A stretch of 64,000 nt of DNA from IMG/VR virus record IMGVR_UViG_3300035698_035310, positions 62,001 through 126,000 of that record; one strand, given 5' to 3'. The position numbers were made by a program, and so were the translations under genes. The stretch's first letter is position 1, and each line of letters opens with the position of its first letter. This document shows positions 1,384 through 59,032 of this stretch, piece after piece. The notes beneath the pieces were generated by a model, which ran no database searches, was not told the origin of the DNA, and was given only the letters and a program-made list of their open reading frames with translations.

Positions 1384-1387
1384 TAAC

Positions 1388-1573
1388 GTGGGCATTTGGA
1401 GAGGTTGCACACAAAAAGATTTGGTCAAGCAGTTTATCATCGATAAAGGCACCCTCGACGCTATATATATTGCTAAACGGTTATGGCCTTCCCATCCACA
1501 ACCATCCGAATGGATTGAGTTTACCGAAGATGATATTAATCAGTTACAACAGTATGAAATGGAGAATAAATGA
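1388..1573 (+). CDS. hypothetical protein
   Basis: 61-aa ORF filling the gap; GAAGGA upstream; overlaps next start (ATGA). Confidence 0.5.
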   Translation: MGIWRGCTQKDLVKQFIIDKGTLDAIYIAKRLWPSHPQPSEWIEFTEDDINQLQQYEMENK

Positions 1574-2400
1574 TGGACGCACAATTTATTGATTTATCAC
1601 AGATGACACCGGAAGCGGTTAAAAGCGCAGTGTTTAAAAATACCGCTACTAACCCATTAACGATTTTTCCAATTCTTGCAAGTTTGCCGATATTGGGTGT
1701 TTGGGCGATTTTTGATGCAGGTTTGTTATTTGTTGCGTTAAGTGTTTTATCGGCTGCGGGTGGTGGTAGCATGTTTGCTATAAATTACTTTGGTCGTTAT
1801 GCAGTGTTCTCTAACAAATATTTCATTCAACTTCGAAAAGATAATGAAGCGAAAGCAAAACAGAAACTCGTCGAAGTTGAAGAATTTCTCGATGAACGCG
1901 AATTTGAGCAAGGTGCAAGACAGGTAACTAAATTGCAAGCATCAATGACTGCTTTTGAAAAGGTTCTTGATCGTAAATTTGAACCGCATGAATTTGCACG
2001 TGCCCGATATCATGGCGTAGCCGAACAAGTTCAATTGAATGCACTTGGCAACCTAGAACAAATTGTGACTATGTTGACGGCGGTTGACGCAATTGATCCA
2101 GAATATATTCAAAGACGTATTGACGAACTTGGCGAAATTGCAAATGATAACGATGGTTTGAATGATTCGCAGTGGGAAGAAAAAGAAGCACTTGAAGCAC
2201 GATGGGAACTTCGTGAAAATCAATTCAAGGGTATTGACGAACTGCTTTCACAGAACGAAAAAGCAATGACTGAACTTGGTAAAATATCAACCAATATTGC
2301 CTCTTCAAATGTTGCGGGTAATAGCGCAGAAGAAGATTTAGAATCAGCAATCGATTCACTTAACAATCTTGGAAAAGACGCCCAAAAGCATTGGGCTTAA
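1570..2400 (+). CDS. membrane protein with two N-terminal TM helices and long coiled coil (XpaC-like architecture)
   Basis: Hydrophobic aa ~30-72, then acidic heptad-rich helix; GGAG SD. Confidence 0.6.
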   Translation: MMDAQFIDLSQMTPEAVKSAVFKNTATNPLTIFPILASLPILGVWAIFDAGLLFVALSVLSAAGGGSMFAINYFGRYAVFSNKYFIQLRKDNEAKAKQKLVEVEEFLDEREFEQGARQVTKLQASMTAFEKVLDRKFEPHEFARARYHGVAEQVQLNALGNLEQIVTMLTAVDAIDPEYIQRRIDELGEIANDNDGLNDSQWEEKEALEARWELRENQFKGIDELLSQNEKAMTELGKISTNIASSNVAGNSAEEDLESAIDSLNNLGKDAQKHWA

Positions 2401-2425
2401 CTGAAACTATAAAGGAGAACTTATT

Positions 2426-3466
2426 ATGCGTAAATTATGTACTTATATGCTTGCTTTCACTGCATTTGCGATAATCGCTATTGTCGTTGCTGAAAGTGTG
2501 AACGCAGCAGAAACTGTTAAAGTTGGGTGGTCGCGATATACAGGATTTGAACCATTGGGCCTTATGCAAAATACCGGAATTATGGAAAAATGGAATAAAA
2601 AGATGGGCACGGATGTCCAACTTGAATTTGTTGGCAATTATGTTGATTCGGTAACATTGTATTCATCCGGTCAATATCAAGGTGTTGCTGTAACCAACAT
2701 GGACGTTTTAGCCATCGCTGGTGTAGGTGGACGACATTCTACCGCAGTTATTGTTGGTGATTATTCGAATGGTAACGACGGGTTGGTTCTTAAAGGGTTT
2801 TCATCGCTTGCGAAAGTTAAATCAAATATCAATTTGGTTGAATATTCGGTATCGCATTATTTACTTGCACGATGTGCAGAAAAAATGGGTGTTGATATAA
2901 ATTCATTCACTCTAGAAAACACGATGGATTCAGACATTCCGGCAGTAGTTGAAGCGAATGATGCGATTGCGGTTGTTGCGTGGAATCCAATGCTTACCAG
3001 TATCAAAGAATTGAACGACGCTAATATCGTTTGCACCAGTTCAGAATTTCCTGGCGAGATCATCGACATGGTTGTTGTAAGCGACGACGTTGATGAAAAT
3101 TCTCGTAAAGCATTGACGGGTGCATGGTATGAAGCAATGGCGTTGATTAAATCTGGCGATGTTGATACATTATCATTTTTGGCTGAACAATCAGGTAGCA
3201 CATTGGAAGATTTTATGTCACAATTGAAAACTACACATTTGTTTTATACTGCCAATGATGCAGTTTCGTTTATTAAAGATGCGGAATTAAAAGCAACGAT
3301 GACTAAGGTTGTTAAGTTTTCGTTTGAGGCTGGTGTATATGATGGTGTTGATGATCCAAATGAAATTGGTGTGAAGTTTGCTGATGGTTCAGTGATGGGT
3401 GATGAAGCAAATGTAATGCTTACGTTTGATCCAAGTGTTACACAGTGGGTATCTACTGCAAAATAA
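2426..3466 (+). CDS. ABC transporter periplasmic substrate-binding protein (urea-carboxylase-associated/NitT-TauT type)
   Basis: Signal peptide; VGWSRYTG, TNMDVL, GDYSNGNDG, VEYSVSHYLLAR, WNP, PGEIID, GAWYE motifs; AAGGAG SD. Confidence 0.9.
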   Translation: MRKLCTYMLAFTAFAIIAIVVAESVNAAETVKVGWSRYTGFEPLGLMQNTGIMEKWNKKMGTDVQLEFVGNYVDSVTLYSSGQYQGVAVTNMDVLAIAGVGGRHSTAVIVGDYSNGNDGLVLKGFSSLAKVKSNINLVEYSVSHYLLARCAEKMGVDINSFTLENTMDSDIPAVVEANDAIAVVAWNPMLTSIKELNDANIVCTSSEFPGEIIDMVVVSDDVDENSRKALTGAWYEAMALIKSGDVDTLSFLAEQSGSTLEDFMSQLKTTHLFYTANDAVSFIKDAELKATMTKVVKFSFEAGVYDGVDDPNEIGVKFADGSVMGDEANVMLTFDPSVTQWVSTAK

Positions 3467-3469
3467 CAC

Positions 3470-3527
3470 TTGACACAATATGTATATATGATAAAATGGT
3501 GTAATAGAAATATTACACCATTTTTTT
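3470..3527 (+). promoter_or_regulatory. sigma70 promoter overlapping a terminator-like hairpin
   Basis: TTGACA(3470)-N16-TAAAAT; hairpin AAAATGGTGTAATA-gaaa-TATTACACCATTTT followed by T run. Confidence 0.6.
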
Positions 3528-3540
3528 ACGAGGAGTGCAA

Positions 3541-3651
3541 ATGATTTATAAAAATAAGTTATTCAGAAATTCAAATTTTAGACTAACGGTAGAAATTGCA
3601 TTTACTATCACAGTTTTTTTATTGGTGGCGTTTTTTGGCGCATATTATTAA
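3541..3651 (+). CDS. small membrane protein (36 aa, not in ORF track)
   Basis: GAGGAG SD; MIYKNKLFRNSNFRLTVEIAFTITVFLLVAFFGAYY*. Confidence 0.55.
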   Translation: MIYKNKLFRNSNFRLTVEIAFTITVFLLVAFFGAYY

Positions 3652-3675
3652 TATAATAAAATAAGGAATAATTAA

Positions 3676-4509
3676 ATGAAAGAATCTAAATTTTTTGGAC
3701 TACATGCAAGACCTGGAAAAAAGTTAGGAATATTTCTAATGTTTATTCCATTCATTTTTGCGTTGTTTGTATATATGGGTGGATCGCAATATCGCCAAAT
3801 GGAAAACGAAAAAGACAAAGTTATGCCTACTATTGCAAAAATGGTAGATTCCACGATCAAATACACAGTTACCGAAGATCGAAAAGGAAATTATCGACTA
3901 TTAAATGACGCTGTTAATAGCGTGCGTCGAATCGTAATAGGTGTTACATTAGCAGCATTGGTTGGTTTGATGTTGGGTATGAATACGGCGTTATTCCCCG
4001 GTATGCGAGAACTTTTAAATCCATTTATTACATTCTTTTCAAATATTCCAGCATTGGCATTAATGCCGATCTTACTTATTACGATGGGGACAGGCGAGGT
4101 TGCAAAAATTGGACTTATATTCATTGGCACCGTGTTTATGATTACACGTGATGTTTTTCGAGCAACAAACGAACTCCCCAAAGAACAAATCACTAAAGCA
4201 CTTACATTAGGCGCAACCGAATTTGAAGTTGTGTATAAAATCGTGCTGCCACAAATCATTCCATCGCTTTTAAGCACTGTGCGACTTAGTTTAGGAGCAG
4301 CATGGTTATTTCTTATTGCTGGTGAAGCAATCGCATCTACTGATGGCTTAGGATATCGTATATACCTTGTGAAGCGGTATATGGCTATGGATGTTATTAT
4401 TCCTTATGTATTGGCTATTACCGGATTGGCGTTTAGTATGGATCGTATATTAAAACGATTTATCGGTTGGAAATATCCTTGGTATGTAGCAACAAGCGGA
4501 GGTAAGTGA
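3676..4509 (+). CDS. ABC transporter permease (NitT/TauT family)
   Basis: Multiple TMs; EAA-like loop KALTLGATEFEVVYKIVLPQIIP; AWLFLIAGEAIASTDGLGYRI. Confidence 0.92.
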   Translation: MKESKFFGLHARPGKKLGIFLMFIPFIFALFVYMGGSQYRQMENEKDKVMPTIAKMVDSTIKYTVTEDRKGNYRLLNDAVNSVRRIVIGVTLAALVGLMLGMNTALFPGMRELLNPFITFFSNIPALALMPILLITMGTGEVAKIGLIFIGTVFMITRDVFRATNELPKEQITKALTLGATEFEVVYKIVLPQIIPSLLSTVRLSLGAAWLFLIAGEAIASTDGLGYRIYLVKRYMAMDVIIPYVLAITGLAFSMDRILKRFIGWKYPWYVATSGGK

Positions 4510-4510
4510 T

Positions 4511-4939
4511 ATGGTTAAATGGACAGATGGCGACGACGATGATAAATTGCGTTCAGCCCCTTTAGCATCACAAGCAGAAGAAATACAAACAACTTTAAAC
4601 AGTTTGATTGAGGAAGGACCAGAAATTGTGAATGGTGTTAGATTGCAGCTTAATGATATGCCAGCAATGATATACGATCCTCAATCGTCTGCAATGGCAT
4701 TAGTTGAAATGCGACGACTTGATAAAGGTGAATCAAAATTGGTAAAAGTCACCTTAATGATGTTGGTGCCAATAGATGTATCATTAAATGTTGTTGAAGA
4801 TAATGTTTCGTGCGCAATAGATAATATCATAGATCAAGATCAGTTTATGGATGATCCGGTAGATGATACATATCCAATTATTGAAAATGTTAAATTGCTT
4901 ACAACAAAAAGTGAAGAAATAACGTTGGAAGGGGAATAA
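4511..4939 (+). CDS. hypothetical acidic protein
   Basis: 142-aa ORF tightly packed between permease and ATPase. Confidence 0.6.
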   Translation: MVKWTDGDDDDKLRSAPLASQAEEIQTTLNSLIEEGPEIVNGVRLQLNDMPAMIYDPQSSAMALVEMRRLDKGESKLVKVTLMMLVPIDVSLNVVEDNVSCAIDNIIDQDQFMDDPVDDTYPIIENVKLLTTKSEEITLEGE

Positions 4940-4941
4940 TA

Positions 4942-5882
4942 ATGATAGCCAAAGCAAACAAACTTAAGAACTCAAACCTTTTACATATTCAAGATGTTTA
5001 TAAGGAATATGACGATAATGTCATTTTGGACAACATTGATTTATCCGTCAGTAAAGGTGCATTCGTGACCGTAGTGGCCCATCTGGATGTGGTAAATCTA
5101 CACTGTTGCGATTAATTCTTGGTCAAGAAACACCCACCAGCGGCAATGTATCATTAGATGGCAAAACCGTTGGTCGTGCTGATGTTAATCGTGGCATCGT
5201 ATATCAAAAATATTCACTATTTCCAAATCTTACCGTTTTGGACAACGTTCTTCTTGGTAAGAAACTTGGAGATAATAAAGATGAATGGTCGCAAAATAAA
5301 CGCATATTGACCGAAGAAGCAATGCATTTTTTATCAAGTGTTAAACTTGGAGAACATGCGAACAAATATCCACACCAACTTTCTGGCGGTATGCAACAGC
5401 GGGTCGCAGTTATGCAAGCACTTATCATGAAACCAAATATTTTGATGATGGACGAACCTTTTGGTGCACTTGATCCAGGCACACGTGAAGATATTCAAAT
5501 TTTTCTTTTAGAGCAATGGAAAGAACATGGTATGACTATTTTCTTTGTGACACACGACTTGGAAGAAGCTGTATTTCTTGGAACTCGCATTATCACATTG
5601 TCGCAATATTATACAGATGATCGTCATGATGATTTGCCCGGTATGCTTTCGTATCAACGCAATTGGCACGGTGCCAAAGTTGTATCTGATCGAAGCGTCG
5701 AACATATGAATGACGACATCAAAGGTTCGGTGACAGAAAAACAAACAAAAGAATTCTCTGAAATCATTGAAGATATTCGCGATGAAGGCTTCAATCCTGA
5801 AAATATTAGACATGTGTCAGAATTTAATCTTACACATCGCAATAGTTTTCAAATATTAACATCAGAGGAGCAAGTAAAATAA
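4942..5882 (+). pseudogene. ABC transporter ATP-binding protein with -1 frameshift at ~5075 (real lesion or sequencing error)
   Basis: ATG 4942 frame reads ...ILDNIDLSVSKGAFVTVV; Walker A GPSGCGKSTLLR continues in the -1 frame from 5076; LSGGMQQR, MDEPFGALD, VTHD downstream. Confidence 0.85.
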
Positions 5883-6160
5883 TGAAAGATTCTAATTTTA
5901 CCGATAATAAACTATATGCACTTATGTGGGTCATTGTGGGTGTTGTATTGTGTTCTTTAATAAGCGGCATAACAATATATAATATTCATAAAAATGAAAT
6001 GCCATTGCGCATGATTAAAAATGGCGTTAACCCTGCGGTATTAGAATGTCTAGACAAAAATTGGACATATGTCTCTGTCCATGAAATATGTAAAAATGTA
6101 TTAACCGATAGCAACTTGACAAACGATGAAGCAAATGAATTGGTTGAAAAACTTCGATGA
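5882..6160 (+). CDS. hypothetical membrane protein
   Basis: Single TM; TAATG coupling. Confidence 0.65.
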   Translation: MKDSNFTDNKLYALMWVIVGVVLCSLISGITIYNIHKNEMPLRMIKNGVNPAVLECLDKNWTYVSVHEICKNVLTDSNLTNDEANELVEKLR

Positions 6161-6501
6161 AATCATATTATATAATATTAGAAATTTGGCGACATTTTTT
6201 AGTAGTATGTTCAATCCTGTTCGGTGTTATTGTTATTATATCAGGAGTAATAGGTTCTGAATATATCAATGTCGTTTATTTCGCTCGTGGTGATTGGGCA
6301 ATGATTTTCCTGATTACTGGCGCACTTGTTATTTCATATTGTATATTTTACTATATTTTACTACCAATAGAAGGAATATTTTTAATATTAGGCGTTGCGT
6401 TTGTGGCTATGATACACAAATATAATAATGGCGTAGTCAGTATCGAAAATTTCGTTAATGATTACATGAATTATGTAATAAGAAAAATGGAGAGAAATTA
6501 A
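6157..6501 (+). CDS. hypothetical multi-TM protein
   Basis: Three hydrophobic segments; ATGA overlap. Confidence 0.6.
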   Translation: MKSYYIILEIWRHFLVVCSILFGVIVIISGVIGSEYINVVYFARGDWAMIFLITGALVISYCIFYYILLPIEGIFLILGVAFVAMIHKYNNGVVSIENFVNDYMNYVIRKMERN

Positions 6502-6502
6502 A

Positions 6503-6820
6503 ATGAAAATATTTATGATATTGATGTTATTGAGTATGACATCAATGATAGGAATCGCAAATGCGGAGACAATCACCATCAATGCTAAACCAATTGTAGA
6601 AGAGGAATGGCTTTGGCATACAGTATGCACCATGATCGTTCCAGGTTATGTTGATAGAATTATGATGGATGAAAAGCATGTGGATACATTTGCTCTTCAA
6701 GTGGCGACAACGATATATCGTCGGACTGTGATATCTAACAAATATAGACGACATTTCATGATAGGCAATAATATTTGGTGCACGACTGCTAATCGTATAG
6801 ATATTGAGGATAATAGGTAA
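6503..6820 (+). CDS. hypothetical exported protein
   Basis: Signal peptide ending ANA; GGAG SD. Confidence 0.6.
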   Translation: MKIFMILMLLSMTSMIGIANAETITINAKPIVEEEWLWHTVCTMIVPGYVDRIMMDEKHVDTFALQVATTIYRRTVISNKYRRHFMIGNNIWCTTANRIDIEDNR

Positions 6821-6826
6821 ATGATA

Positions 6827-6856
6827 TTGACGTAATGTATGGATATCCGGTATAAT
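6827..6856 (+). promoter_or_regulatory. sigma70-type promoter
   Basis: TTGACG-N18-TATAAT. Confidence 0.6.
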
Positions 6857-6890
6857 ACATTTTTTAACGATTACAAAGGTTATATACATT

Positions 6891-7136
6891 ATGATTAAAT
6901 ATTTAGTTGGTGCGATTGCACTATTGGCTATTGGTGCGTGCGCCCCAACATTTCCAGCCGGTCCATCTGGTGGAATACCAGAGTATGTTTGGGTCGGTTG
7001 TCGCACGGTAGATAAAAATCCTGCTAGTGATGGCAGCATCGCTTTTGGGCCATTTGGAACAATGACATCAGTGTTGTTTTTCAAACAAAAAAATAAAGAT
7101 GGTTCGGTAAAACCAACTGTTCAAGAAGAATGTTAA
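6891..7136 (+). CDS. small lipoprotein
   Basis: Lipobox-like IGAC after a hydrophobic signal. Confidence 0.7.
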   Translation: MIKYLVGAIALLAIGACAPTFPAGPSGGIPEYVWVGCRTVDKNPASDGSIAFGPFGTMTSVLFFKQKNKDGSVKPTVQEEC

Positions 7137-7248
7137 TTAAAACCGGTGTAAGTTATTGATATTGCATAATATTGTAAGGGTGTTGTAAGGTTTGAAGTGT
7201 ATACTATTGATAAATACAATAGAACATTCCAAATGAAGGACAAAGGAC

Positions 7249-7737
7249 GTGAATAAGTTACTCTATGCGATAATCGCACTATTAATATCTACAAATCAAG
7301 TTATAGCCGCCGATGCTACCGGAACGGCTTCCGCAACAATTGTTGCACCGATTGCAATTTCTGCTGGCGCAGCAATGAATTTTGGAACAATGGCTCCAAC
7401 TGGTACAGCAGGAACGGTTCTTGTTAATACATCAGGTGGAACAACCGCTACTAATGTTACAGAATTGGGTTCTGGGTCATCGTCACAAGGTGTATTCACT
7501 GTAACAGGTGAAGGTTCCGCGACATACAGTCTTACAGTTCCAACCACCGATGTAACATTAACAAGTGGTTCAGACACAATGGTTGTAAACGCATTTAATC
7601 ACGATGCAGGAGCAACACCAGCAATAGCTAGTGGTGGGACAAGCACCATAAACGTAGGAGCAACGTTGAATGTTGGGTCTGCTCAAGCAGTCGGTTCTTA
7701 TACTGGCACTTACACAGTTACCGTTAACTACAACTAA
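7249..7737 (+). CDS. DUF4402-like secreted pilin-fold protein
   Basis: Signal peptide; ATGTASATIVAPI..MNFG; VGATLNV...GSYTGTYTVTVNY C-terminus; GATAAATA late-type promoter at 7209. Confidence 0.85.
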   Translation: MNKLLYAIIALLISTNQVIAADATGTASATIVAPIAISAGAAMNFGTMAPTGTAGTVLVNTSGGTTATNVTELGSGSSSQGVFTVTGEGSATYSLTVPTTDVTLTSGSDTMVVNAFNHDAGATPAIASGGTSTINVGATLNVGSAQAVGSYTGTYTVTVNYN

Positions 7738-8056
7738 AGCGGCAAGTGTAACGGGTTCAGTTTCTGCTACAATTGTTACACCATCTGGTGTCGCAGTTAT
7801 AACAGTTCCCAATGATGTGGTAATAACTGTGTCAAGTGAATTAAAAAATTTGATACCGAATATACGATCCGAACAAATAATCCAAGCCGTACAGAAAGAA
7901 TTAGTGCGGTTTGGAGGATTTACTATATCGGGGTCGCCTAATCAAGTTATATCGGTTGTTGTTGATGGTATATCATTTGATGCAGTTATCAATTCATTTG
8001 GTTCTGCTATATTTGATAAAAAGGTGAAACGAACATTTATGATACATTATAACTAA
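7670..8056 (+). CDS. DUF4402-like paralogue (divergent/shortened)
   Basis: AGGAG SD at 7656; signal peptide, then ASVTGSVSATIV; FTISGSPNQ; ends in YN like the paralogue. Confidence 0.7.
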   Translation: MLGLLKQSVLILALTQLPLTTTKAASVTGSVSATIVTPSGVAVITVPNDVVITVSSELKNLIPNIRSEQIIQAVQKELVRFGGFTISGSPNQVISVVVDGISFDAVINSFGSAIFDKKVKRTFMIHYN

Positions 8057-8508
8057 TGAAAAATATATTACTCATTATACTTTTTAGTATTTTTGCATTC
8101 CCTGCTATTGCTCAAATGGTAGTTATTGCAAAAACTAATATGAAATTTGGTTCGGTATCTTCCAGCGTGGATGGTAGTGGAACCGTAACGATCTCGCCAA
8201 CATCTGATACAACGACGCTATCTGGTACGATATTTGATTTTGGTGGTACGGTAAAACGAGGCAAATTCAAAATAGAAAATGGAACACCCAAAGCGTTTGT
8301 TACTATCATATTACCTCCTTCGATCACCATCACCAAAGGATCACATACGTTGACGGTGGACCAATTAACCCTAAGTGTTACCAACCCGGTGAAATTGAAT
8401 AACTCGGGTAAGAAAGTTTTTTATGTTGGTGGTAGATTATCAATCCCAACTAATCAAAAAGCTAAAAAAAATTATAATGGTGATTACACCGTAACCGCAG
8501 TAGAATAA
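8056..8508 (+). CDS. DUF4402-like secreted protein
   Basis: Signal peptide AIA; MKFGSV; FYVGGRLSI...YNGDYTVT. Confidence 0.8.
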   Translation: MKNILLIILFSIFAFPAIAQMVVIAKTNMKFGSVSSSVDGSGTVTISPTSDTTTLSGTIFDFGGTVKRGKFKIENGTPKAFVTIILPPSITITKGSHTLTVDQLTLSVTNPVKLNNSGKKVFYVGGRLSIPTNQKAKKNYNGDYTVTAVE

Positions 8509-8599
8509 AATTAATATTTAATCACATTTTAATATATACATTGTCATATTGAATGTGCTATTCTCTTCAAGTAAGTTAAATAAACGAGGAGTACGAATA

Positions 8600-11209
8600 A
8601 TGAGTCAAGAAGATACAGCACGTGGTTCACGCGTCCGTGAATCAGAATTAGTTTTGCCACCTGGAGTATTTGCGTATGTTTTGGATGAAACAAAAGGTAA
8701 CGTAACAACATATTGTGGACCAAACAAATCAAGTTTATCACAAACCGATTCACCAGTTCTATATGATAATAAAACTGGAAGATTCACCCCGTGTAAAATT
8801 GAAAATGCATTACAAGTTAATATAACTGCAAGACAGGGTGAATATATTGTTCTACGCAATACCTCTAATAATGGTTCACATCCTGATGCCGGTAAAGCAG
8901 AACCACTTAATAATGATTTATTGAATATTGGTCAAACAGAAAATATTCCGGGTCCGGTTTCTTTTCCGTTATGGCCTACACAAACATGTGAAGTAGTTCC
9001 TGGACACCACCTTCGTTCTAATCAATATTTGTTAGTTCGTGTTTATGATGAAGAAGCAGCAAAAGATAATTGGGATAAAGCAGTTATTAAAGAAGCATCT
9101 ACTGGTAGCGAAGACACCGCCAGCGAAGATTCTGTTGTAACATCTAGCGAATCTGAAAATCTGGTTACAGGCCGATTGATGACCGTTAAAGGAACGAATG
9201 TAAGTTTCTATATTCCACCAACAGGCATCGAAGTTCTTAAAGATGAAACAGATTCATATGTTCGTGATGCTGTTACTCTTGAACGCCTCGAATATTGCAT
9301 CCTTCTTAATGAAGATGGTAACAAAGATTACAAACGTGGACCAGAAGTTGTATTTCCACAGCCTACTGAAGATTTTGTAACTAGCAATTCGAGCGGAACG
9401 ATAAAGCGCAAATTTCGTGCATATGAGTTGAATGACAACTCTGGACTTTATATTAAAGTTATTGCCGATTATGAAGAAGAAAATAGCCTTGGGGTTGTTG
9501 TTAAGAATAAACAAGGCGATGAATTATTCCTAACAGGCGATGATACTGCCATTTACTTCCCAAGACCTGAACATGCTATTATCAAATATGGCGAACAAGA
9601 AAAGCATTATTCTATTGCTATTCCAAAAGGCGAAGCGCGTTATGTTCTTGACCGAAATACTGGCGACGTTGAGTTAGTTACGGGACCAACTATGTTCCTT
9701 GCCGATCCACGCAAACATGTATCTGTTCGTCGTGTTCTCGATGATAGAATGTGTGGTTTGTATTTCCCTGGAAATACCGACGTATTATCACACAATCGTG
9801 TTCTTCGTGATGCACAAGTTGAAACTGGTGCTAGTTATGTAGAAGAAAATGATTTAGAAATCGCATATGCAGCAAGCAATCTCGACGATGGTGCAGGTTC
9901 TTCAATGACACGTGGATATAGTGCAACCAAACGCCGTTTAGCACCAGAAAAATCTACATTTGGCGACGAAATGAGCCGTGGAACTACATTTACACCACCG
10001 CGTATGATTACATTAGACACCAAGTTTGATGGCGCTGTGACAGTTAATGTATGGACTGGTTATGCAATTCAAGTGGTTAACAAATCTGGCGACAGACGCG
10101 TAATTCAAGGGCCACAAACAGTTTTATTGGAATATGACGAATATCTAGAGCGTTTATCTTTAAGTAAAGGTCGCCCTAAAAATCGTGATAATAAGTTAGA
10201 CACTGTGTATCTACGCGTAATGTCTAATCCAGTTAGTGATAAAATTGTTGTAAAAACTAAAGATTTGGTTGATTTAACCATCGATCTTAAATATTTGGTT
10301 AGATTTGTTGCCGACGAAAGCAATTGGTTCAATGTTGATAATTATGTTCAATATTTGTGCGATCACATGCGTTCACTTATTGGCAATCATGTTCGTCAAC
10401 TTACTATTCAAGAGTTTTATGCAAACGCAGCAGAAATATTGCGTGATTTGACACTTGGTAAAAAAGTTGAGGGTGCCGACGGTAGAGATAACCGTTTGTT
10501 TGGTGAAAATGATATGGAAGTTTACGACCTTGAAGTTATCACGGTTGCCATTGATGATTATGACATTGCTGATTTATTAAGCACTTCGCAACAAGAAGAA
10601 TTGGTTAATAGCATCAAATTGGAAACTGAACAACGCAGTCGTATTTTGATTGAAGGTCAAGAAGTAGCCAAACAGGGTGTATTGATAGCCAGAGAAAAAA
10701 CCAACGAATTGGTCGATCTCACCAAAAAGACGGCAGCGCATCGCGATCATGAAATTCGCACTGATGCAGTTGATCACGAAAATGCTATAGATAAGCTTCG
10801 TGCAGAGAGTAAACTTGATACACAGGCTACATATCAATTGATCAACGAATCGAAGCGTGGTGATAGAAAAGCAGATGAAGAATTGAGTATAAAATTTGCT
10901 GAAAAAGAATTGAGTCGTGAAATCGAACGCATTGTTGCATTAGCAGCCGCTGATGAAACCCGTGCTAAATCTGTAACACCAGGTTTGATTGAAGCACTTG
11001 CATCTATTGCTAAAACTGGCGCGTTTGAAAGCATATCTGAGCATCTTGCTCCATTATCGGTTGTTCGTGGTGAATCCATTGAACACACATTCAAAACGTT
11101 GATGGCTGGAACAGGTATGGAACCCTTGATTGAAAACATAGGTAAATTAGGTTCAAGTAGATTTGTTGCTGGAACCGGAACTGATGGCATGTCTATCAGC
11201 AACGATTAA
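8600..11209 (+). CDS. major vault protein (MVP) homologue
   Basis: Start reassigned to ATG 8600 (GAGGAG SD). Vault-type repeats (LVLPPGVFAYVLDETKGNVTTYCGP; IAIPKGEARYVLDRNTGDVELVTGP; AIQVVNKSGDRRVIQGPQTVLL), LSLSKGRPK motif, SPFH-like shoulder, long C-terminal cap helix. Confidence 0.88.
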   Translation: MSQEDTARGSRVRESELVLPPGVFAYVLDETKGNVTTYCGPNKSSLSQTDSPVLYDNKTGRFTPCKIENALQVNITARQGEYIVLRNTSNNGSHPDAGKAEPLNNDLLNIGQTENIPGPVSFPLWPTQTCEVVPGHHLRSNQYLLVRVYDEEAAKDNWDKAVIKEASTGSEDTASEDSVVTSSESENLVTGRLMTVKGTNVSFYIPPTGIEVLKDETDSYVRDAVTLERLEYCILLNEDGNKDYKRGPEVVFPQPTEDFVTSNSSGTIKRKFRAYELNDNSGLYIKVIADYEEENSLGVVVKNKQGDELFLTGDDTAIYFPRPEHAIIKYGEQEKHYSIAIPKGEARYVLDRNTGDVELVTGPTMFLADPRKHVSVRRVLDDRMCGLYFPGNTDVLSHNRVLRDAQVETGASYVEENDLEIAYAASNLDDGAGSSMTRGYSATKRRLAPEKSTFGDEMSRGTTFTPPRMITLDTKFDGAVTVNVWTGYAIQVVNKSGDRRVIQGPQTVLLEYDEYLERLSLSKGRPKNRDNKLDTVYLRVMSNPVSDKIVVKTKDLVDLTIDLKYLVRFVADESNWFNVDNYVQYLCDHMRSLIGNHVRQLTIQEFYANAAEILRDLTLGKKVEGADGRDNRLFGENDMEVYDLEVITVAIDDYDIADLLSTSQQEELVNSIKLETEQRSRILIEGQEVAKQGVLIAREKTNELVDLTKKTAAHRDHEIRTDAVDHENAIDKLRAESKLDTQATYQLINESKRGDRKADEELSIKFAEKELSREIERIVALAAADETRAKSVTPGLIEALASIAKTGAFESISEHLAPLSVVRGESIEHTFKTLMAGTGMEPLIENIGKLGSSRFVAGTGTDGMSISND

Positions 11210-11227
11210 TATTTAATTGTTATAACG

Positions 11228-11262
11228 AATGGCTACTATATTTCTATAGTAGCCATTTTTTT
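11228..11262 (+). terminator. intrinsic terminator after MVP
   Basis: AATGGCTACTATA-tttc-TATAGTAGCCATT + T run. Confidence 0.85.
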
Positions 11263-11310
11263 GTCTACATACTATAAATACTTATAACCTATTATAATGA
11301 GGATAATATT

Positions 11311-11598
11311 ATGGTAACAAAATATGGACAAACTGATGCACAATTGAGTTATAATCAACCAGTATCCGCAATTGAAGTTGTAACGGATACTGATCCTATG
11401 CCATTAGCAAAACAATCAAGATTGGGTAAGTATGAACTTTATAAATCCAAAAATGGTGAATGGCATTTTCGATTGAAGGCTGGTAATGGCGAAATTATCG
11501 CTATATCGGAAGGATATAAATCCAAAGAGGGTGCATTAAATGGCATCGATTCGGTAAAAAGAAACTCACAAACAAGAAAAACTGTTGAACTTTCTTAA
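11311..11598 (+). CDS. YegP/DUF1508 family protein
   Basis: YELYKSKNGEWHFRLKAGNGEIIAISEGYKSKEGALNGIDSVK; TATAAATA late promoter at ~11273. Confidence 0.9.
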   Translation: MVTKYGQTDAQLSYNQPVSAIEVVTDTDPMPLAKQSRLGKYELYKSKNGEWHFRLKAGNGEIIAISEGYKSKEGALNGIDSVKRNSQTRKTVELS

Positions 11599-11811
11599 CT
11601 AAATACTTATGTACTAATATTATAGAAATATATAGGGAAAAACATGATTTAGCAATTTATGAGTGGACCGACATTGATCGTGAAAACACAAAAAGGGGTT
11701 TGACATCGGTTAAACCCCTACATTTTTGTATTATATTTGGTTTTAAATTGAATTATTTGATAAATATTGGTATAATTGCATAATAATAGCCTAAATTGGT
11801 ATTATAATGCA

Positions 11812-11873
11812 AAGAGTTGCAGAATAGTCTGGACTCAAAAAATTAATACTTGCTTTTAAGGGGTAATAACATG
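11812..11873 (+). promoter_or_regulatory. ROSE-like RNA thermometer in the hsp20 5' leader
   Basis: TACTTGCT-ttta-AGGGGTA pairs a UUGCU motif (bulged G) with the SD; upstream hairpin GAGTTGCAGA-atag-TCTGGACTC. Confidence 0.65.
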
Positions 11874-12329
11874 AATAATAAAAACACAACACTAACAGAA
11901 TTTGATAGATTTGTAGACCAAGTGTCTAACGACCTAGCCAAAACCACAATCGGAATGGGAAGAGTTTTTGATGGCGTAAGAACATCACTCGGAAATTACG
12001 ATTCGTATCCACCATTTAATTTTGAACAACATAGCGAAACGCAATATCGCGTCGTTTTTGCGTTAGCTGGTTTCGAAAAAGAAGATATCACGGTGGAAGT
12101 TAAAAATGGTAATTGGCTTACTATCGTGGGTGAAAAACTCGACGACGAAAATGAAGTTCAACCAACATATTTACATCGTGGTATAGCCAATCGTGCGTTT
12201 AAACGTTTGGTTCAAATTGCCGATGATGTCGAAGTTAAAGATGCGGTAATGAACAATGGATTATTGACTGTAACATTGGAACAACATATTCCAGAATCAA
12301 AACAATCAAAATCTATTAAAATAAAATAA
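11871..12329 (+). CDS. small heat shock protein (Hsp20/IbpA family)
   Basis: SYPPFN, ALAGF, YLHRGIANRAF, NGLLTV motifs. Confidence 0.95.
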   Translation: MNNKNTTLTEFDRFVDQVSNDLAKTTIGMGRVFDGVRTSLGNYDSYPPFNFEQHSETQYRVVFALAGFEKEDITVEVKNGNWLTIVGEKLDDENEVQPTYLHRGIANRAFKRLVQIADDVEVKDAVMNNGLLTVTLEQHIPESKQSKSIKIK

Positions 12330-12334
12330 CTATC

Positions 12335-12368
12335 AAAAATAGAGCAGCATAATCGCTGCTCTATTTTT
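12335..12368 (+). terminator. intrinsic (bidirectional) terminator
   Basis: AAAAATAGAGCAGC-ataatc-GCTGCTCTATTTTT. Confidence 0.85.
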
Positions 12369-12371
12369 CCA

Positions 12372-12400
12372 TTGACATCGTTTTAAAATTGATATATAAT
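12372..12400 (+). promoter_or_regulatory. consensus sigma70 promoter
   Basis: TTGACA-N17-TATAAT. Confidence 0.85.
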
Positions 12401-12435
12401 GACTTTCTAATATTACTTATAAAAGGATTTATTAT

Positions 12436-12846
12436 ATGACAACAGCGATCACAACAGATACACCAGCACTTCGTGTGAAAATAATGGGAATGATCGATTC
12501 AATATTTGAATATTGTGACGAGAATGATACTGACAAAGTTTATAAAAAAATGCATGAAGTGTTGAAATGTCTACACGATAATGGATTTTTGACTCAAGAG
12601 TTGGACGAAGACGATCTATACGAAATCGAAGCGGATTCCAAATATATATTTCATGTAGGTCTTACCGACGGCGTCGATGGTTGGAATTTTAATGATGAAC
12701 GCGCCCTTTCGTCACATTATTCATCGTTTGCCCTATATGTTGTTAGGAATATGGTAAAATGGAATAACTATGCTGCATCTATTACAGATAGTAAATACTG
12801 GGTGCATGTATCAAAAATATATACAAATACGGTAATGAAACTCTAA
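12436..12846 (+). CDS. hypothetical protein
   Basis: AAGGA SD; follows promoter. Confidence 0.7.
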   Translation: MTTAITTDTPALRVKIMGMIDSIFEYCDENDTDKVYKKMHEVLKCLHDNGFLTQELDEDDLYEIEADSKYIFHVGLTDGVDGWNFNDERALSSHYSSFALYVVRNMVKWNNYAASITDSKYWVHVSKIYTNTVMKL

Positions 12847-12858
12847 GAGGTAATATTA

Positions 12859-14616
12859 ATGAACGAATCAATTGGAAATATAGTATCACTTGAAAATGAT
12901 GTAATAGTTATTCGCGATGGTGTTACTATATCTTTGACCGAAGGGGATGAAATATTGCAACAAGATGAAATAGTAACAACAGAAGGTAGTGTCGTAACGA
13001 TACAGTTTACTGATGAATCTATTTTCTCGATGAGTGATAGTGGATCGATGATAATCGATGAAATGATATACGATCCAGCCGAACAAATGGGAAGTATGAC
13101 ATTAGAAATAGGTCACGGTGTGGCTACTTTTGTATCTGGAATGATCGCAAAATCTGACCCAAATGCAATGCTTATCGAAACACCAGTAGCAACAATAGGC
13201 ATTCGTGGAACGAAAGTTGGTGTAGACGTAGCAACCGATGGCATCACACGTGTGGTATTATTGGAAGAACATGATGGGTTCGTTGGTGAAATTGTAATTT
13301 CCACTTCTGTGGATGTTCAAGTAATAAATCGAGCAAATATGTCAACAACTATTTCATATGGCGATATCGTTCTAAGTGATCCAATTTTGATGACTGATGT
13401 ATTAATTGATTCGATATATGGTAATTCTTTATTGCGTGCTAATGAAGCAGTAAAATTTTTAGACGATGTAATACCTGAATTAGATGAAAATAATAATTTA
13501 TTATATGAAACACAAACAGGGTTTGATGAATTTGTAACTGATGCCGGTGGTGACGAATATGATGAAGATTTCACCAACATAGTTGATGAACGAATTAATA
13601 ATGTTGTTAATACATATGGTGCCATTGATCCAATAAGTGAAATTTCTGAAACTGTGACACCAGATGTTGAAATTTTTACTGATGACAAAAATGAAAATGA
13701 TGAAATTATTAATTTAAATATATTTCCTGAACCAGTGCCTACACCTACACCTGAACCCACGTCTGAACCAGTGCCTACACCTACACCTACACCTGAACCC
13801 ACGTCTGAACCAGTGCCTACACCTACACCTACACCTGAACCCACGTCTGAACCAGTGCCTACGCCTACACCTACACCTGAACCAACGTCTGAACCAGTGC
13901 CTATATTGGTGCTTGACCCAGTTAGAATCGATAAGAATAATTTTGATGATATAGACAGCGGATTTAGGGTTGTGGGTAGAGATATTGATGGAGAAATCGC
14001 CGAAGATAATGTAGTTGTATCTAGTGGCGCACTTGGTGTTAGTGGTGCGGTGATTGGAAATGTTGTCCCCAATCAAATTGGACATAATCCAGTTACTGGT
14101 GAAGCCGAAGGTATAATTGTAGAGTTCGACAACAATGTAACACAAGTTGAATTTGGTGTTTCAAGGTTGTATAAAAACGAAGGTGATGGACGTGGATCGT
14201 CTGGCGACGAACAGGGCAAGGTTATACTTTATAGAAATGATGAAATTGTAGGCGAAGTAGAATTTACAGCACAGCAACGACATACTGGAACATTTACAGT
14301 ACAAGCGGATGATGGCGGCACGTTTGACACGATTGAATTTACGGCTACGGATTATTCTGATGATGATGCCAATCAAACTGGTGATAGTTCAGATTATTTA
14401 GTTACGCAAATTACATACACCCCAGTCGCACCCGATGAAAATGAATTTGACATAAATGATATAATTTGTGGCGATGATGAAATGAATTTTCCAGATGATG
14501 AAAATCAAGAAATAATAAATGGCAATAATTCCAATGGTAATGATAGTGGCGTCTCGGGTGACAGTTATACAACTACCGACAACTTCCAAAATGGTACCGT
14601 TATCGATTTTGAATAA
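12859..14616 (+). CDS. FecR-domain protein with Pro/Thr linker and acidic beta-rich C-terminal domain
   Basis: FVSGMIAK...[13 protein letters not shown] FecR motif; [15 protein letters not shown] repeats. Confidence 0.8.
13726..13903 (+). repeat. coding tandem repeat (one 36-bp and three 42-bp units plus a partial)
   Basis: CTGAACCAGTGCCTAC(ACCTAC)nACCTGAACCCACGT units at 13727, 13763, 13805, 13847 and partial at 13889. Confidence 0.95.
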
Positions 14617-15932: not shown

Positions 15933-16651
15933 TTAAAGAATATCTATTAATAGAAGATACATTATACCCCATGCTGCCGGATAGTTCCGAAGAAGCAGGA
16001 TTTCACGACTCTAAAATGTGGAATGTGTACAAAGGCGACGAAATGATTGGTATCATAAGCGGTTATACATTTCAACCCGTTTCGGTACAATATATGAAAT
16101 ATGAAGGAATGCAAGTATATCATTTTGATAAAGAAATTGAAGATGGTGAAGCATCAGATTTATACGCGCTAGCACTCCATGATGAGGTAGTAAAAAAATA
16201 TGATTCTTCACAAGACGTAACAGAAAATATTCTTACCGAAACAATGCACATACAAGAAGCGATGCCAGATGAACGAATTATTAATGCCACCGTTGCGCAT
16301 CAAGCGGTGATAGAAGAAAAACAAACACAAGCAAATATTTTATATGAAGCAACCGAACAACCAGCACTAATTGATACATTGCGTGATACCTATGAATCAG
16401 TTCATAATATAACTTTTGTATTTGGTAAAACAATTGCCGAGGCAATAGAATTTCTTAAAGAAGAAGGCGAAGTCGTAGGCGATGATGCAGTTATAGGAAT
16501 ACATGAAGATTATGGTCAACGATGTATCGTAATGCACGAAAGTGAAGAGCATCGAACAGAACGATTGAGAGTCGAAGATGAATTGCGCGAAGCCGCAATG
16601 TCGAAACTTACAATTGAAGAAAAACGTGCGCTTGGTATAGGGAGGAAATAG
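15929..16651 (+). CDS. hypothetical protein
   Basis: Coupled ORF; C-terminal AMSKLTIEEKRALG motif. Confidence 0.7.
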   Translation: MIKEYLLIEDTLYPMLPDSSEEAGFHDSKMWNVYKGDEMIGIISGYTFQPVSVQYMKYEGMQVYHFDKEIEDGEASDLYALALHDEVVKKYDSSQDVTENILTETMHIQEAMPDERIINATVAHQAVIEEKQTQANILYEATEQPALIDTLRDTYESVHNITFVFGKTIAEAIEFLKEEGEVVGDDAVIGIHEDYGQRCIVMHESEEHRTERLRVEDELREAAMSKLTIEEKRALGIGRK

Positions 16652-16863
16652 TGACAGAATCTTTATCTAATATTCGTCGGAGAACTTTGGATATGCCAGC
16701 ATGGAAAAAGTTTTTATGCGCATTGCGACGACACAAATACAACGGTTGGAAAACGATATATCGATCAGGTTTTGAATCACTGTATTCAACTGGTATGAGC
16801 CGTGTATGCACTTATTGCGGTAAAGAAGAAAAAATACTCACGGGTAATAGAAAAGGAGGTTGA
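16651..16863 (+). CDS. small Zn-ribbon protein
   Basis: FLC...HKY...CTYCG. Confidence 0.6.
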   Translation: MTESLSNIRRRTLDMPAWKKFLCALRRHKYNGWKTIYRSGFESLYSTGMSRVCTYCGKEEKILTGNRKGG

Positions 16864-18447: not shown

Positions 18448-18528
18448 GCTGGTAACGCATAGTGGGGGTGCAGCGTGCTCATAACGCGCCGACGAAAGTC
18501 CGGGTTGGTTCGATTCCAACTATCAGTA
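18448..18528 (+). tRNA. tRNA with CAT anticodon (Met or Ile2), long variable arm, no encoded CCA
   Basis: Acceptor GCTGGTA/TATCAGT; D stem GCAT/GTGC; anticodon arm GCGTG-CTCATAA-CGCGC; variable GAC-GAAA-GTC; T arm GTTGG-TTCGATT-CCAAC; terminator-like GTTGGC-ttta-GCCGAC+T run at ~18542-18567. Confidence 0.85.
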
Positions 18529-18548
18529 CATATAAGAAATGGTTGGCT

Positions 18549-34549: not shown

Positions 34550-34619
34550 TATTTGACATAATACCCCCCCCACTGTGATATACTTATATAAGTTTAAAAA
34601 ATATAGGAGAGATATTAGT

Positions 34620-53649: not shown

Positions 53650-53653
53650 CGAA

Positions 53654-53902: not shown

Positions 53903-53915
53903 AGAGGAATATATC

Positions 53916-54119: not shown

Positions 54120-54164
54120 ATAATGTAGTATAATCAATACATTAACATAATAAAGGACGGCTTA

Positions 54165-57654: not shown

Positions 57655-57857
57655 CAACATTATTGCGCGAAGGAATCAGAGATAATGCCGGTGTGGCATC
57701 AACACTTGCTTTACATCGATTAGGGTTTCCTGACGTCACCAGTGTCCTCATTGGTAATACTTATGAATTTGATTACGAAGGAGACGTTGACGAAATCGTA
57801 AAAGAGTTGTATAATCCAGTAATGGAAGATTATACAGTGGAGGTTATTGAAGAATGA
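57639..57857 (+). CDS. purS: phosphoribosylformylglycinamidine synthase subunit PurS
   Basis: LREGIRDNAG.A...AL..LGF..V..V.IG...L.NPVMEDY. Confidence 0.85.
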   Translation: MRYRVTTLLREGIRDNAGVASTLALHRLGFPDVTSVLIGNTYEFDYEGDVDEIVKELYNPVMEDYTVEVIEE

Positions 57858-58201
57858 AAGTATATTTAGATGATTATCGTAAAATACCAGATGACACTTG
57901 GACTTTGGCTACGTCATATCAAAACTTTAGACATGTTATTGAAGATGGCGATGAAGAGATAACTGAAATATCATTCGACCACGATTTGGGGGTAGATAGT
58001 AGCAACCATGTAGCCTTAACAGGCATGGATGCAGTTAAATGGCTAATCAGCCATATAGAATGCTTTGCACCAGAATTAAATAGATCATTAAAAGCCATAT
58101 ATGTTCATAGTGCAAATCCAGTTGGTGCAGAAAATATACGTTCATACTGCAAAAGCGCACAAAAGCACGGAATTTTAAATATGGACGTGGTCGTTAAATA
58201 G
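57854..58201 (+). CDS. cyclic-phosphate-processing receiver-like domain protein
   Basis: VYLDDYR, ISFDHDLG, TG.D...W, VHSANPVG. Confidence 0.85.
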   Translation: MKVYLDDYRKIPDDTWTLATSYQNFRHVIEDGDEEITEISFDHDLGVDSSNHVALTGMDAVKWLISHIECFAPELNRSLKAIYVHSANPVGAENIRSYCKSAQKHGILNMDVVVK

Positions 58202-58554: not shown

Positions 58555-58570
58555 CAATTAAAGGTGATTG

Positions 58571-59032
58571 ATGAAAATTAGATATAAAATAGGAGATTTG
58601 TTGGATTGTCCTGAACAAACAATATTGCAGGGAGTTAATATGCAGATCAAAATGCGATCTGGGATAGCCAAAGCAATTCGTGAAAAATACCCAGAAGTTT
58701 ACGAAGAATATAAAAAAGTCGCAGAAACAAAGGGTTTACACCTTGGTGATGTTATATGGGTGGCAACAGATGATAAATTGATAGCCAATGGTGTCACACA
58801 AGAATTTTATGGCAGAGATAATAAGTGCTATATTGATTACGAGGCGATACGAACGGTAATGAAAACTATTAATTCTTGTGCTATATTGAGTAATATTACG
58901 CATGTATCCATGCCATTAATAGGTGCAGGATTGGGCGGCGGCGATTTTAGTATAATTTCAAAAATTATTGAAGAAGAGTCCAAGAATTTTCAACCGGTTG
59001 TGTATGTATTAACAGAATCTGATCTTCCGTGA
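58571..59032 (+). CDS. macro-domain (ADP-ribose hydrolase) protein
   Basis: GDLL, QGVN...M.SGIA.AI, TQ.FYG, MPLIGAGLGGG. Confidence 0.9.
   Translation: MKIRYKIGDLLDCPEQTILQGVNMQIKMRSGIAKAIREKYPEVYEEYKKVAETKGLHLGDVIWVATDDKLIANGVTQEFYGRDNKCYIDYEAIRTVMKTINSCAILSNITHVSMPLIGAGLGGGDFSIISKIIEEESKNFQPVVYVLTESDLP

Follow-up and report, generated by a model that had tools for sequence, protein, structure and literature searches.

A full-length major vault protein homologue in a huge T4-related phage, with a possible link to RNA repair

The stretch of DNA analysed here, hereafter the window, comprises 64,000 nucleotides of the IMG/VR virus record IMGVR_UViG_3300035698_035310 (positions 62,001 to 126,000 of that record), and it encodes a major vault protein (MVP) homologue of 869 residues. 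In animals, MVP, which has nine vault repeats, assembles into a closed barrel of 78 copies, built as two 39-fold halves; besides this shell the animal vault contains TEP1, which is a TROVE-domain protein, as well as a PARP and a small RNA. The role of vaults has remained unsettled since 1986. A model-made preliminary description of the window had read the gene as a phage-encoded full-length MVP and proposed that it might build a vault-like compartment in the infected cell; here we report what the protein and the surrounding genes look like, how widely its relatives are distributed, and which function their gene context suggests.

The MVP gene and its domain architecture

The open frame around the MVP gene spans 8549-11209 on the + strand, and the ATG at 8600 yields a protein of 869 amino acids (aa). 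Its signals, the predicted domains and the features discussed below are collected in Table 1. As the preliminary description had stated, the gene possesses a Shine-Dalgarno sequence and a terminator of its own, and all peptide strings quoted in that description were located in the translation at the expected places: the first of these, LVLPPGVFAYVLDETKGNVTTYCGP, starts at aa 17, the GP-type strings GPEVVFP, GPTMFL and GPQTVLL at aa 247, 362 and 504, ERLSLSKGRPK at aa 517, and the three shoulder strings at aa 577, 602 and 632.

Table 1. Coordinates of features at the MVP locus (window positions) and at related phage loci (L-numbered, with positions of their own)
Feature	Coordinates	Strand	Basis or remark
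Shine-Dalgarno sequence GAGGAG	8586..8591	+	8 nt before the ATG; direct sequence reading
MVP homologue, coding sequence	8600..11209	+	869 aa, stop included in coordinates; sequence and fold evidence
Predicted N-terminal all-beta repeat region, aa 14-380	8639..9739	+	AlphaFold2 secondary structure, Foldseek, weak reciprocal repeat cross-matches
Insert, aa 381-470	9740..10009	+	Predicted short helices and disordered stretch; pLDDT <50 at aa 418-470
Last vault repeat (Vault_3), aa 480-538	10037..10213	+	LSLSKGRPK at its end; aligned to rat MVP 467-519
SPFH-like shoulder, aa 543-651	10226..10552	+	MVP_shoulder match; pLDDT 80-90; SPFH cages as secondary fold matches
Predicted cap helix, aa 654-791	10559..10972	+	Single continuous predicted helix, 138 residues, 38% charged
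C-terminal region, aa 792-869	10973..11206	+	Predicted short helices and disordered tail, at the cap-ring position (AlphaFold2)
Intrinsic terminator-like hairpin	11227..11258	+	14-bp stem and T run, just past the MVP stop
DUF1508 gene	11311..11598	+	Order MVP ... DUF1508 ... HSP20 recurs in relative L167
HSP20 small heat-shock protein gene	11850..12329	+	Within the same conserved local order
cREC_REC gene (cyclic-phosphate-processing receiver)	57854..58201	+	5.1e-24; 47 kb downstream of MVP
Macro-domain gene	58568..59032	+	2.5e-06; 47 kb downstream of MVP
L078, Ro60-type TROVE+vWA gene			7.2e-41 and 4.1e-52; upstream of MVP, with an SPFH gene directly downstream of MVP
L065, RtcB gene	12672..13850		4.7e-122; directly after MVP; tmRNA 2.6 kb downstream, 16465-16843
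L041, WGR-PARP_reg-PARP protein gene	7280..8590		1.4 kb upstream of MVP
L001 (LR756500) and L040, PARP-like and Macro genes			Near MVP; cREC also in L001
L012 and L013, Ro60-like protein gene			Near MVP

Significant sequence-level homology to MVP is confined to aa 475-796, that is, to the part running from the last vault repeat to the cap helix. Within it the Pfam model MVP_shoulder (PF11978) was matched over profile positions 3-116 of 118 (E 2.8e-22; 79.4 bits against a cut-off of 25) and Vault_3 was matched with E 2.1e-12 (47.4 bits, cut-off 28.8); Band_7 scored under its cut-off (E 0.0015; 19.1 bits, cut-off 23.6), and the models Vault, Vault_2 and Vault_4 gave no match to the protein, leaving repeats 1-8 unrecognised. 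A phmmer search of the PDB returned six matches, all of them animal MVP chains (best E 1.7e-14), and the best alignment pairs aa 481-796 with rat MVP residues 459-802, bringing the predicted cap helix into register with that of rat MVP up to residue 802. With a profile built from 30 family sequences, the MVP match in the PDB was strengthened to E 4.4e-28. The window motif LSLSKGRPK aligns with LSLSAGRPK of rat MVP (residues 498-506), a parallel that the preliminary description had also drawn. Relatives of the protein carry the Joint Genome Institute (JGI) name 'major vault protein', and PHROGs contains no family for it, the sole match there being a weak one (phrog_29775, 0.0045).

In the AlphaFold2 single-chain model the N-terminal half is all-beta, with a predicted local distance difference test score (pLDDT) of 40-80, and is followed by a confident alpha/beta shoulder and by the cap helix at pLDDT 79-88. 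The N-terminal repeat region contains motifs ending in GP at aa 40, 118, 247 and 362, as well as an acidic Ser/Glu-rich insert at aa 165-190; a second insert (aa 381-470) falls in variable columns of the family alignment and has no aligned counterpart in animal MVP. When the model was compared with the PDB by Foldseek, the 12 best matches were full-length vault chains (E 1.8e-22 to 6.7e-16, approximately 900-970 aligned columns, 16-19% identity in the fold alignment), the next were the crystal structures of the murine MVP repeats R1-R7 at about 1e-06 (E 6.9e-07), and SPFH cages (prohibitin, HflK/C, flotillin, stomatin) followed at about 1e-4. Repeats 1-8 are thus indicated by the fold match to R1-R7 together with weak internal cross-matches, and not by significant sequence similarity, the repeat count being roughly 7-9. 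A search of BFVD returned no full-length viral MVP, only SPFH proteins.

On the evidence of sequence and of the predicted model, the window protein is a full-length MVP homologue in which partly putative vault repeats, an SPFH-like shoulder and a long predicted cap helix follow one another. The domain order given in the preliminary description is supported by Pfam, phmmer, the family profile, AlphaFold2 and Foldseek; the SPFH-like shoulder and the long charged cap helix were found as described there. Of the tandem vault repeats the last is recognised by Pfam, and the earlier ones are indicated by fold and weak cross-matches, without significant sequence similarity.

Phage origin of the locus

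The identical protein is encoded on a 359,044-bp IMG/VR contig, and the same MVP with the same flanking genes is found on five assembled contigs from different sources, four of which measure 0.2-1 Mb; the 570,549-bp ENA contig k141_202852 of ERZ27315719 and a 74-kb Logan contig are among the contigs that share these flanks. Since the flanks are identical in independently assembled contigs, a chimeric join at the MVP locus is very unlikely. The GC content (0.30-0.39), a positive GC skew and a strong bias towards the + strand are uniform across the window, which also encodes a T4-type clamp loader (phrog_168, 2.1e-72) and the medium and large subunits of a T4-type topoisomerase II (phrog_551, 1.7e-129, and phrog_543, 3.8e-147). 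Matches to the large subunit were obtained in 2,257 phage records, and the top-ranking ones come from jumbo phages, namely Atu_ph07 (490 kb), Phosso (469 kb) and K64-1 (347 kb). The contig belongs to a huge phage related to T4, the genome of which measures at least 570 kb. The viral nature of the contig, for which the preliminary description had wanted confirmation, is borne out by the phage-type replication genes, by the length of the two largest contigs named above and by the phage clade mates of the protein.

That description had also placed MVP among unambiguous jumbo-phage genes. Such genes do lie on the same contig, but the clear ones (topoisomerase II, clamp loader, homing endonuclease) begin approximately 36 kb downstream of MVP, and those within 10 kb (OmpA/NMT1-like, ABC-transporter parts, three DUF4402-type genes, DUF1508, HSP20 and a FecR-domain gene) are not typical phage genes. 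These cellular-looking neighbours, together with the fact that no capsid or terminase gene was seen within the 64-kb window, could suggest that the locus is cellular DNA or a chimeric join, a view that is almost certainly wrong given the same gene order in at least five independently assembled contigs, the uniform composition and strand bias, the T4-type replication genes on the same contig and the phage clade mates of MVP. A megablast search of window positions 1-25000 against the phage records gave no match.

Distribution and phylogeny of the phage MVPs

Among 50,697 phage records searched by tblastn, three carry an MVP relative, namely LR756500 (462 kb) and LR756501/LR756503 (735,411 bp), all from uncultured huge phages, and their MVPs are about 41% identical to that of the window over 96% of the protein; no cultured phage with an MVP relative was found in this collection. 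The largest phage known to Al-Shayeb et al. (2020) was one of 735 kb, and vaults are never mentioned in the main text of that work. Far more relatives emerged from larger collections: a word-indexed search of 5.8 billion proteins yielded more than 6,500, an exhaustive search of 1.84 billion representatives gave 1,112 clusters when grouped at 50% identity (with E of 1e-30 or lower for 572 of these), and a profile-guided scan of IMG/VR identified 268 contigs that encode one. Among the best 80 of these 268 contigs, a length of 100 kb or more is reached by 43 and one of 200 kb or more by 13. Bacterial homologues, described as sporadic in the preliminary description, proved not to be so: when one genome per species was scanned, 443 bacterial species genomes were found to carry one, mostly within the Cytophagales/Microscillaceae, Myxococcota/Polyangia, Sericytochromatia, Chloroflexota and Desulfobacterales.

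A tree of 195 proteins, 80 of them the closest bacterial MVPs, separates phage from bacterial sequences, with 4 label changes as compared to a mean of 62 in shuffled controls. A single clade holds 76 of the 80 bacterial proteins, and those of phages fall into at least eight distinct clades that are well supported. The same separation was obtained in a subsampled IQ-TREE run, which leaves the backbone unresolved, and for this reason no direction of transfer between phages and bacteria is claimed. The window protein belongs to an old, deep phage-specific MVP lineage: its clade (support of 100 in the Shimodaira-Hasegawa-like approximate likelihood ratio test, SH-aLRT) unites it with phage contigs from IMG/VR, among them one of 405 kb, and with the 374,748-bp contig P0021, on which gp5, gp25, gp6 and baseplate-wedge genes lie 4-10 kb from MVP.

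Two observations were made on members of this clade. On P0021 (L165), a gene at 13016-13390, 450 nt downstream of MVP, encodes a protein of 124 aa with an RF-1 domain, which may be a ribosome-rescue factor like ArfB. A single 'bacterial' MVP, L085, falls within the clade; it comes from a 20-kb contig (JAKFUT010000352.1) of an 'Obscuribacterales' metagenome-assembled genome. This contig probably belongs to a phage and was binned into a bacterial genome, or else the gene was transferred recently.

Gene context of MVP in related phages

Across the 80 IMG/VR loci no universal neighbour of MVP was found, and the neighbourhood in the window is unique. In one phage clade of 24 members (MVP identity 38-100%, median 64%), on the other hand, 22 loci carry at least one component of an island, the fullest form of which lies on one strand and comprises an array of 3-6 tRNA genes, a gene for a 510-aa DUF2828/DUF7788 protein, MVP, cREC_REC, an RlaP nucleotidyltransferase, a calcineurin-like phosphoesterase, an RNA ligase and a Macro-domain gene. 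A phmmer search with the DUF2828 protein found no match in the PDB. When its structure was modelled, the 13 best PDB fold matches were TROVE/Ro60 structures over the full length, including the Ro60 of Thermus phage phiLo, and because of these fold matches it is regarded as a Ro60-like TROVE+vWA protein. Proteins of this kind accompany MVP in 19 loci of one phage clade and, in addition, in L078, L012 and L013.

In the other phage clades, for which a Pfam census of 70 flanking genes was taken, further partners of this kind are found near MVP in different combinations (Table 1), and an SPFH gene follows MVP directly in L039 as it does in L078. In all, neighbours of an RNA-repair or NAD type (TROVE+vWA, RtcB or RNA ligase, PARP, Macro, cREC, tRNA arrays, tmRNA) occur in at least five phage clades; this recurrent context is the outcome of the survey of IMG/VR MVPs and their neighbourhoods that had been suggested in the preliminary description. 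A TROVE protein has been reported in only a small subset of jumbo phages, in a survey that does not mention vaults (PMC7824862), and a repeated adjacency to MVP by chance is therefore, judged from raw counts, improbable.

Between the Ro60-like gene and MVP of L078 (IMGVR_UViG_3300005533_000001), RNA matches were observed at 8453-8525 and 8875-8939. One is a match to Rfam RF01656, which we take to be the stem-bulge/Y-type RNA group, with 40.2 bits against a gathering score of 38, and the other is a partial YrlA-like tRNA-like module with 32.3 bits, below its gathering score of 69. The stem is predicted to fold no more stably than shuffled sequences (z -1.37), so that it is the Rfam score on which it stands, and the intergenic element is regarded as a candidate phage Y RNA.

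RNA-repair genes in the genome of the window phage

The 570-kb genome was examined across the window and for 10 kb beyond each of its ends. Families that adjoin MVP in other phage clades are represented by the cREC_REC and Macro-domain genes near the far end of the window. Outside the window, a gene for ribosomal protein S21 and one for an RNA ligase (PF09414) lie about 15.5 kb upstream of MVP (L168, 1768-3616), and SmpB is encoded about 5 kb past the window end, near FliG_M/FliM-like hits (L169, 15916-16356). An NMNAT-like cytidylyltransferase gene is located at 33481-33981 of the window, and a homologue of it lies near MVP in LR756500. Since these partners are scattered in the genome, the link to RNA repair is weaker in the window phage than in its relatives: an operon-like linkage of RNA ligase with end-healing and RNA-binding partners is absent at the window MVP and tight only in other clades.

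Possible function of the phage MVP

The reading that we favour, tentatively and at somewhat less than an even chance, is that an MVP cage would serve as the shell or scaffold of an RNA repair particle that is linked to NAD/ADP-ribose chemistry and works in counter-defence. By analogy with MVP and SPFH relatives and with the gene context of related phages, the protein would: i) be made in the infected cell; ii) associate laterally, by way of its shoulder and cap helix, so as to close into a cage or dome in the cytoplasm; iii) provide in this way the shell or scaffold for a particle of RNA quality control and repair with a tie to NAD/ADP-ribose chemistry; iv) act together with a Ro60-like RNA-binding protein, RNA ligases and end-healing enzymes; and v) help to keep tRNAs and translation going when, in defence against the phage, host RNAs are cut by the host itself. 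The RNA ligase, cREC, Macro and SmpB genes of the window phage count in favour of this proposal.

A number of observations weigh against it. In the window, as in its own clade of 14-22 members, no partner gene was found in the 10 kb around MVP; homologues of TROVE, RtcB and PARP were not found anywhere in the window; and no non-coding RNA was recognised, there being no Rfam match at the gathering score in the whole window nor at E up to 0.5 in 6000-13000. Most of the linkage derives from one phage lineage, in which shared ancestry could keep the genes together, and the other clades contribute single examples; moreover, genes for translation and RNA functions abound in huge phages in any case, and the linkage counts are raw ones. 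RNA-repair neighbours were likewise not found, by BLAST and hidden Markov models, in the 8-kb flanks of the 80 closest bacterial MVP loci, a census that is rough because the simple open reading frame caller also took antisense frames in high-GC loci. As regards the structure, the AlphaFold2 model is a middling one (mean pLDDT 61.7, predicted template modelling score, pTM, 0.28), it reaches global TM-scores of only 0.13-0.15 against vault chains, since it misses the extended arrangement of domains, and assembly into a shell is putative. Finally, the residues of the human NAD pocket (R507, P508, H509 and R511) are conserved neither in the window MVP nor in the family consensus.

A bolder version of the RNA-repair proposal, which we consider rather unlikely, is that huge phages build, in the cytoplasm of the bacterium, a true vault-like ribonucleoprotein organelle composed of an MVP cage, a Ro60-like protein, a Y-like or tRNA-like RNA and RNA-ligase/PARP-type enzymes, which would repair tRNAs cut by host anticodon nucleases. 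Phage and bacterial particles of this type would then be ancestral to the eukaryotic vault, and the window MVP would be the shell, its partners residing elsewhere in the 570-kb genome. The corresponding partner set (TEP1/TROVE, PARP and a small RNA with MVP) was not found in the window; its components are present in relatives.

The lack of conservation of the NAD-pocket residues bears as well on a quite improbable alternative, according to which the MVP assembly is a sponge or cage that binds or encloses NAD, ADP-ribose or related signalling nucleotides and in doing so blunts those host defences that act by NAD depletion or use ADP-ribose derivatives as signals, no RNA cargo being needed. It has been shown that animal vaults bind NAD, ADP and ADP-ribose in a pocket of the shoulder (PMC12280208; bioRxiv 10.64898/2026.05.01.722283), the most widely recurring MVP neighbours across phage clades are the NAD/ADP-ribose-processing families Macro, cREC and PARP, and the window itself encodes cREC, Macro and the NMNAT-like cytidylyltransferase. 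Besides the unconserved pocket residues, the Ro60-like proteins, RNA ligases, RtcB, tRNA arrays and tmRNA of related loci suggest RNA over free nucleotides.

Of similarly low probability is the general protective compartment put forward in the preliminary description, a vault-like shell that would shield phage proteins or RNAs or trap host defence effectors without any tie to RNA repair. The full MVP architecture, a gene that stands by itself with its own ribosome-binding site and terminator, and neighbours that vary between clades, as expected of a self-sufficient module, are all consistent with it. Nevertheless, it offers no pointer to a particular cargo and leaves the RNA-repair and NAD context in at least five clades unexplained; the suggestion that RNA is shielded or effectors are sequestered appears too vague, as the context of the relatives points specifically to the repair of RNA (tRNA) and to NAD/ADP-ribose.

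The short distance between MVP and the baseplate genes of P0021 could be taken to mean that the protein is packaged as a structural or ejected component of the virion, and an auxiliary metabolic or storage role was proposed in a 2023 preprint (bioRxiv 10.1101/2023.11.10.566534). That it is a virion protein, an amino-acid store such as has been proposed for bacterial MVPs, or a passenger with no role in infection is nonetheless very unlikely, as the neighbours in most MVP loci are not structural genes, and clades so deep and phage-specific, with conservation over the full length, speak against a passenger acquired recently.

A membrane-associated scaffold of the SPFH type, in which the protein would form an inner-membrane dome like those of HflK/C, flotillin or prohibitin and organise or regulate membrane proteins or proteases, is highly improbable. 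Its SPFH-like shoulder, the Band_7 score, the fold matches to prohibitin, HflK/C, flotillin and stomatin, and the SPFH gene directly after MVP in L078 and L039 speak for such a role, but the Band_7 score stays below the cut-off, the phage has a separate, ordinary SPFH/Band_7 gene (34575-35636, + strand, 9.7e-16), and the window MVP contains no hydrophobic or transmembrane segment, its maximum 19-residue hydropathy being 0.95. Because of this lack of a hydrophobic segment, the organisation of membrane rafts, another role raised in the preliminary description, is unsupported. Animal MVP is cytosolic.

Comparison with known systems and significance

The window MVP resembles the eukaryotic proteins of rat, human and rabbit (PDB 4V60, 9BW6) in length (869 as compared to 861-893 aa), in domain order, in the alignable last repeat, shoulder and cap helix, in the common LSLSxGRPK motif and in being matched best by them in fold. 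It differs from them in the two inserts (aa 165-190 and 381-470), in the NAD pocket, which is not conserved, and in repeats 1-8, which are missed by Pfam; furthermore, no orthologue of TEP1 or PARP4 is encoded in the window.

Bacterial MVPs, which were described in 2013-2019, share the architecture of the window protein and are 42-49% identical to it over the full length, whereas 76 of the 80 closest form a clade apart from those of the phages and have 8-kb flanks devoid of RNA-repair genes. Bacterial homologues were tied to RNA repair and to RtcB operons by Burroughs and Aravind in 2016, according to a passage quoted in PMC13404743, and the link proposed in that passage agrees with the context in several phage clades. 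Phage MVPs have themselves been reported before: an in silico study of 2023 described those of ctOa11 and ct2Ri15, two Caudoviricetes of the gut, and presented them as rare. According to that study, the two phages group with phages of Firmicutes and their MVPs nest among bacterial ones, and one of the two may be a Clostridium prophage (bioRxiv 10.1101/2023.11.10.566534). Like the window protein they are phage-encoded, full-length and known from sequence and AlphaFold models, but the phage that carries the window MVP has a genome of at least 570 kb, and the protein is part of a set of phage clades that is both large and deep. Neither ctOa11 nor ct2Ri15 was matched in the tblastn search of the phage-record collection.

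SPFH cages (HflK/C, prohibitin, flotillin, stomatin, erlin) likewise combine an SPFH-like domain with a subsequent long helix to build a closed dome, but they are membrane-anchored and lack an N-terminal repeat wall, whereas the window MVP has no hydrophobic anchor and a sub-threshold Band_7 score. With Ro60/Y-RNA particles (Rsr-YrlA; the Ro60 of Thermus phage phiLo, PDB 9L5Y) the likeness concerns the relatives, in which a Ro60-like TROVE+vWA protein is the commonest phage MVP neighbour and L078 has, in addition, a stem of the Y/sbRNA type next to a partial module resembling YrlA; the window yielded neither a TROVE gene nor a Y-like RNA. The TEP1 of animal vaults carries a TROVE module as well (bioRxiv 10.1101/872010). 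The jumbo-phage nucleus, the chimallin shell of the Chimalliviridae (PMC7824862), is comparable as a phage-built intracellular protein compartment with a part in counter-defence, yet it is made of an unrelated protein in an unrelated lineage and encloses replicating DNA, of which there is no sign here.

As regards novelty, phage MVPs (2023), bacterial MVPs and the RNA-repair link (2016) were already known, so that the novelty hinted at in the preliminary description does not extend to the existence of a phage MVP. Its remark that no characterised phage vault is known still holds: no solved or purified bacterial or phage vault is present in the PDB (animal MVP chains only) or in the literature searched, and the huge-phage MVP family is not discussed in the published surveys examined. 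What is new is the breadth of the family (268 viral contigs), its deep phage-specific clades and the vault parts list with RNA ligases around phage MVP. This family is a regular feature of huge phages, and the parts list (MVP, Ro60-like TROVE+vWA, PARP, Y-like RNA) recurs together with RNA ligases in several large-phage lineages. If phage MVPs form cages, a phage and a laboratory bacterium would provide a simple genetic test of the RNA-repair idea of vault function, and a second kind of phage-built compartment would stand beside the phage nucleus. For the window by itself the gain is smaller, namely one more MVP, with good support, in a phage whose genome measures at least 570 kb.

Further genes of the window

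Upstream of MVP, positions 85-5882 (+) encode an OmpA/NMT1-like periplasmic-binding fusion, an ABC permease and an ABC ATPase, that is, transporter-like genes in a phage. Three small tandem genes lie just before MVP (7249-8508, +); two of them match DUF4402 (4.4e-28 and 2.6e-20), and the first and third have hydrophobic, signal-peptide-like N-termini, judged by eye from the translations, so that they look like secreted or surface proteins, odd for a phage. Downstream, the local order is shared with L167, in which the MVP is 58% identical and the order ABC_tran ... MVP ... DUF1508 ... HSP20 is repeated; that the HSP20 protein acts as a holdase is speculative. It is followed by a FecR-domain gene (12859-14616, +) containing four copies of a 42-nt (14-aa) Pro/Thr/Glu-rich repeat at 13738-13903 with 98% matches. 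The FecR-domain protein measures 557 aa on the ENA contig and 585 aa in the window, and the copy number seems to vary between assemblies because this difference equals two repeat units.

A cluster of translation and tRNA genes extends over 17090-37241 and includes YqeY, tRNA-Met (18448-18529), a formyltransferase, a TilS-like PP-loop protein, TyrRS and a SpoU methylase, huge phages being known to be rich in translation genes (PMC7162821). Further on, 38128-43611 (+) encodes a 1,827-aa protein with an N-terminal subtilase domain (4.3e-32) and seven He_PIG Ig-like domains. Within 50903-57158, a homing endonuclease gene (50903-51796) overlaps the start of the topoisomerase II medium subunit gene, and a minus-strand zinc-ribbon/DUF723 gene (56028-57158) flanks the topoisomerase II genes on the other side.

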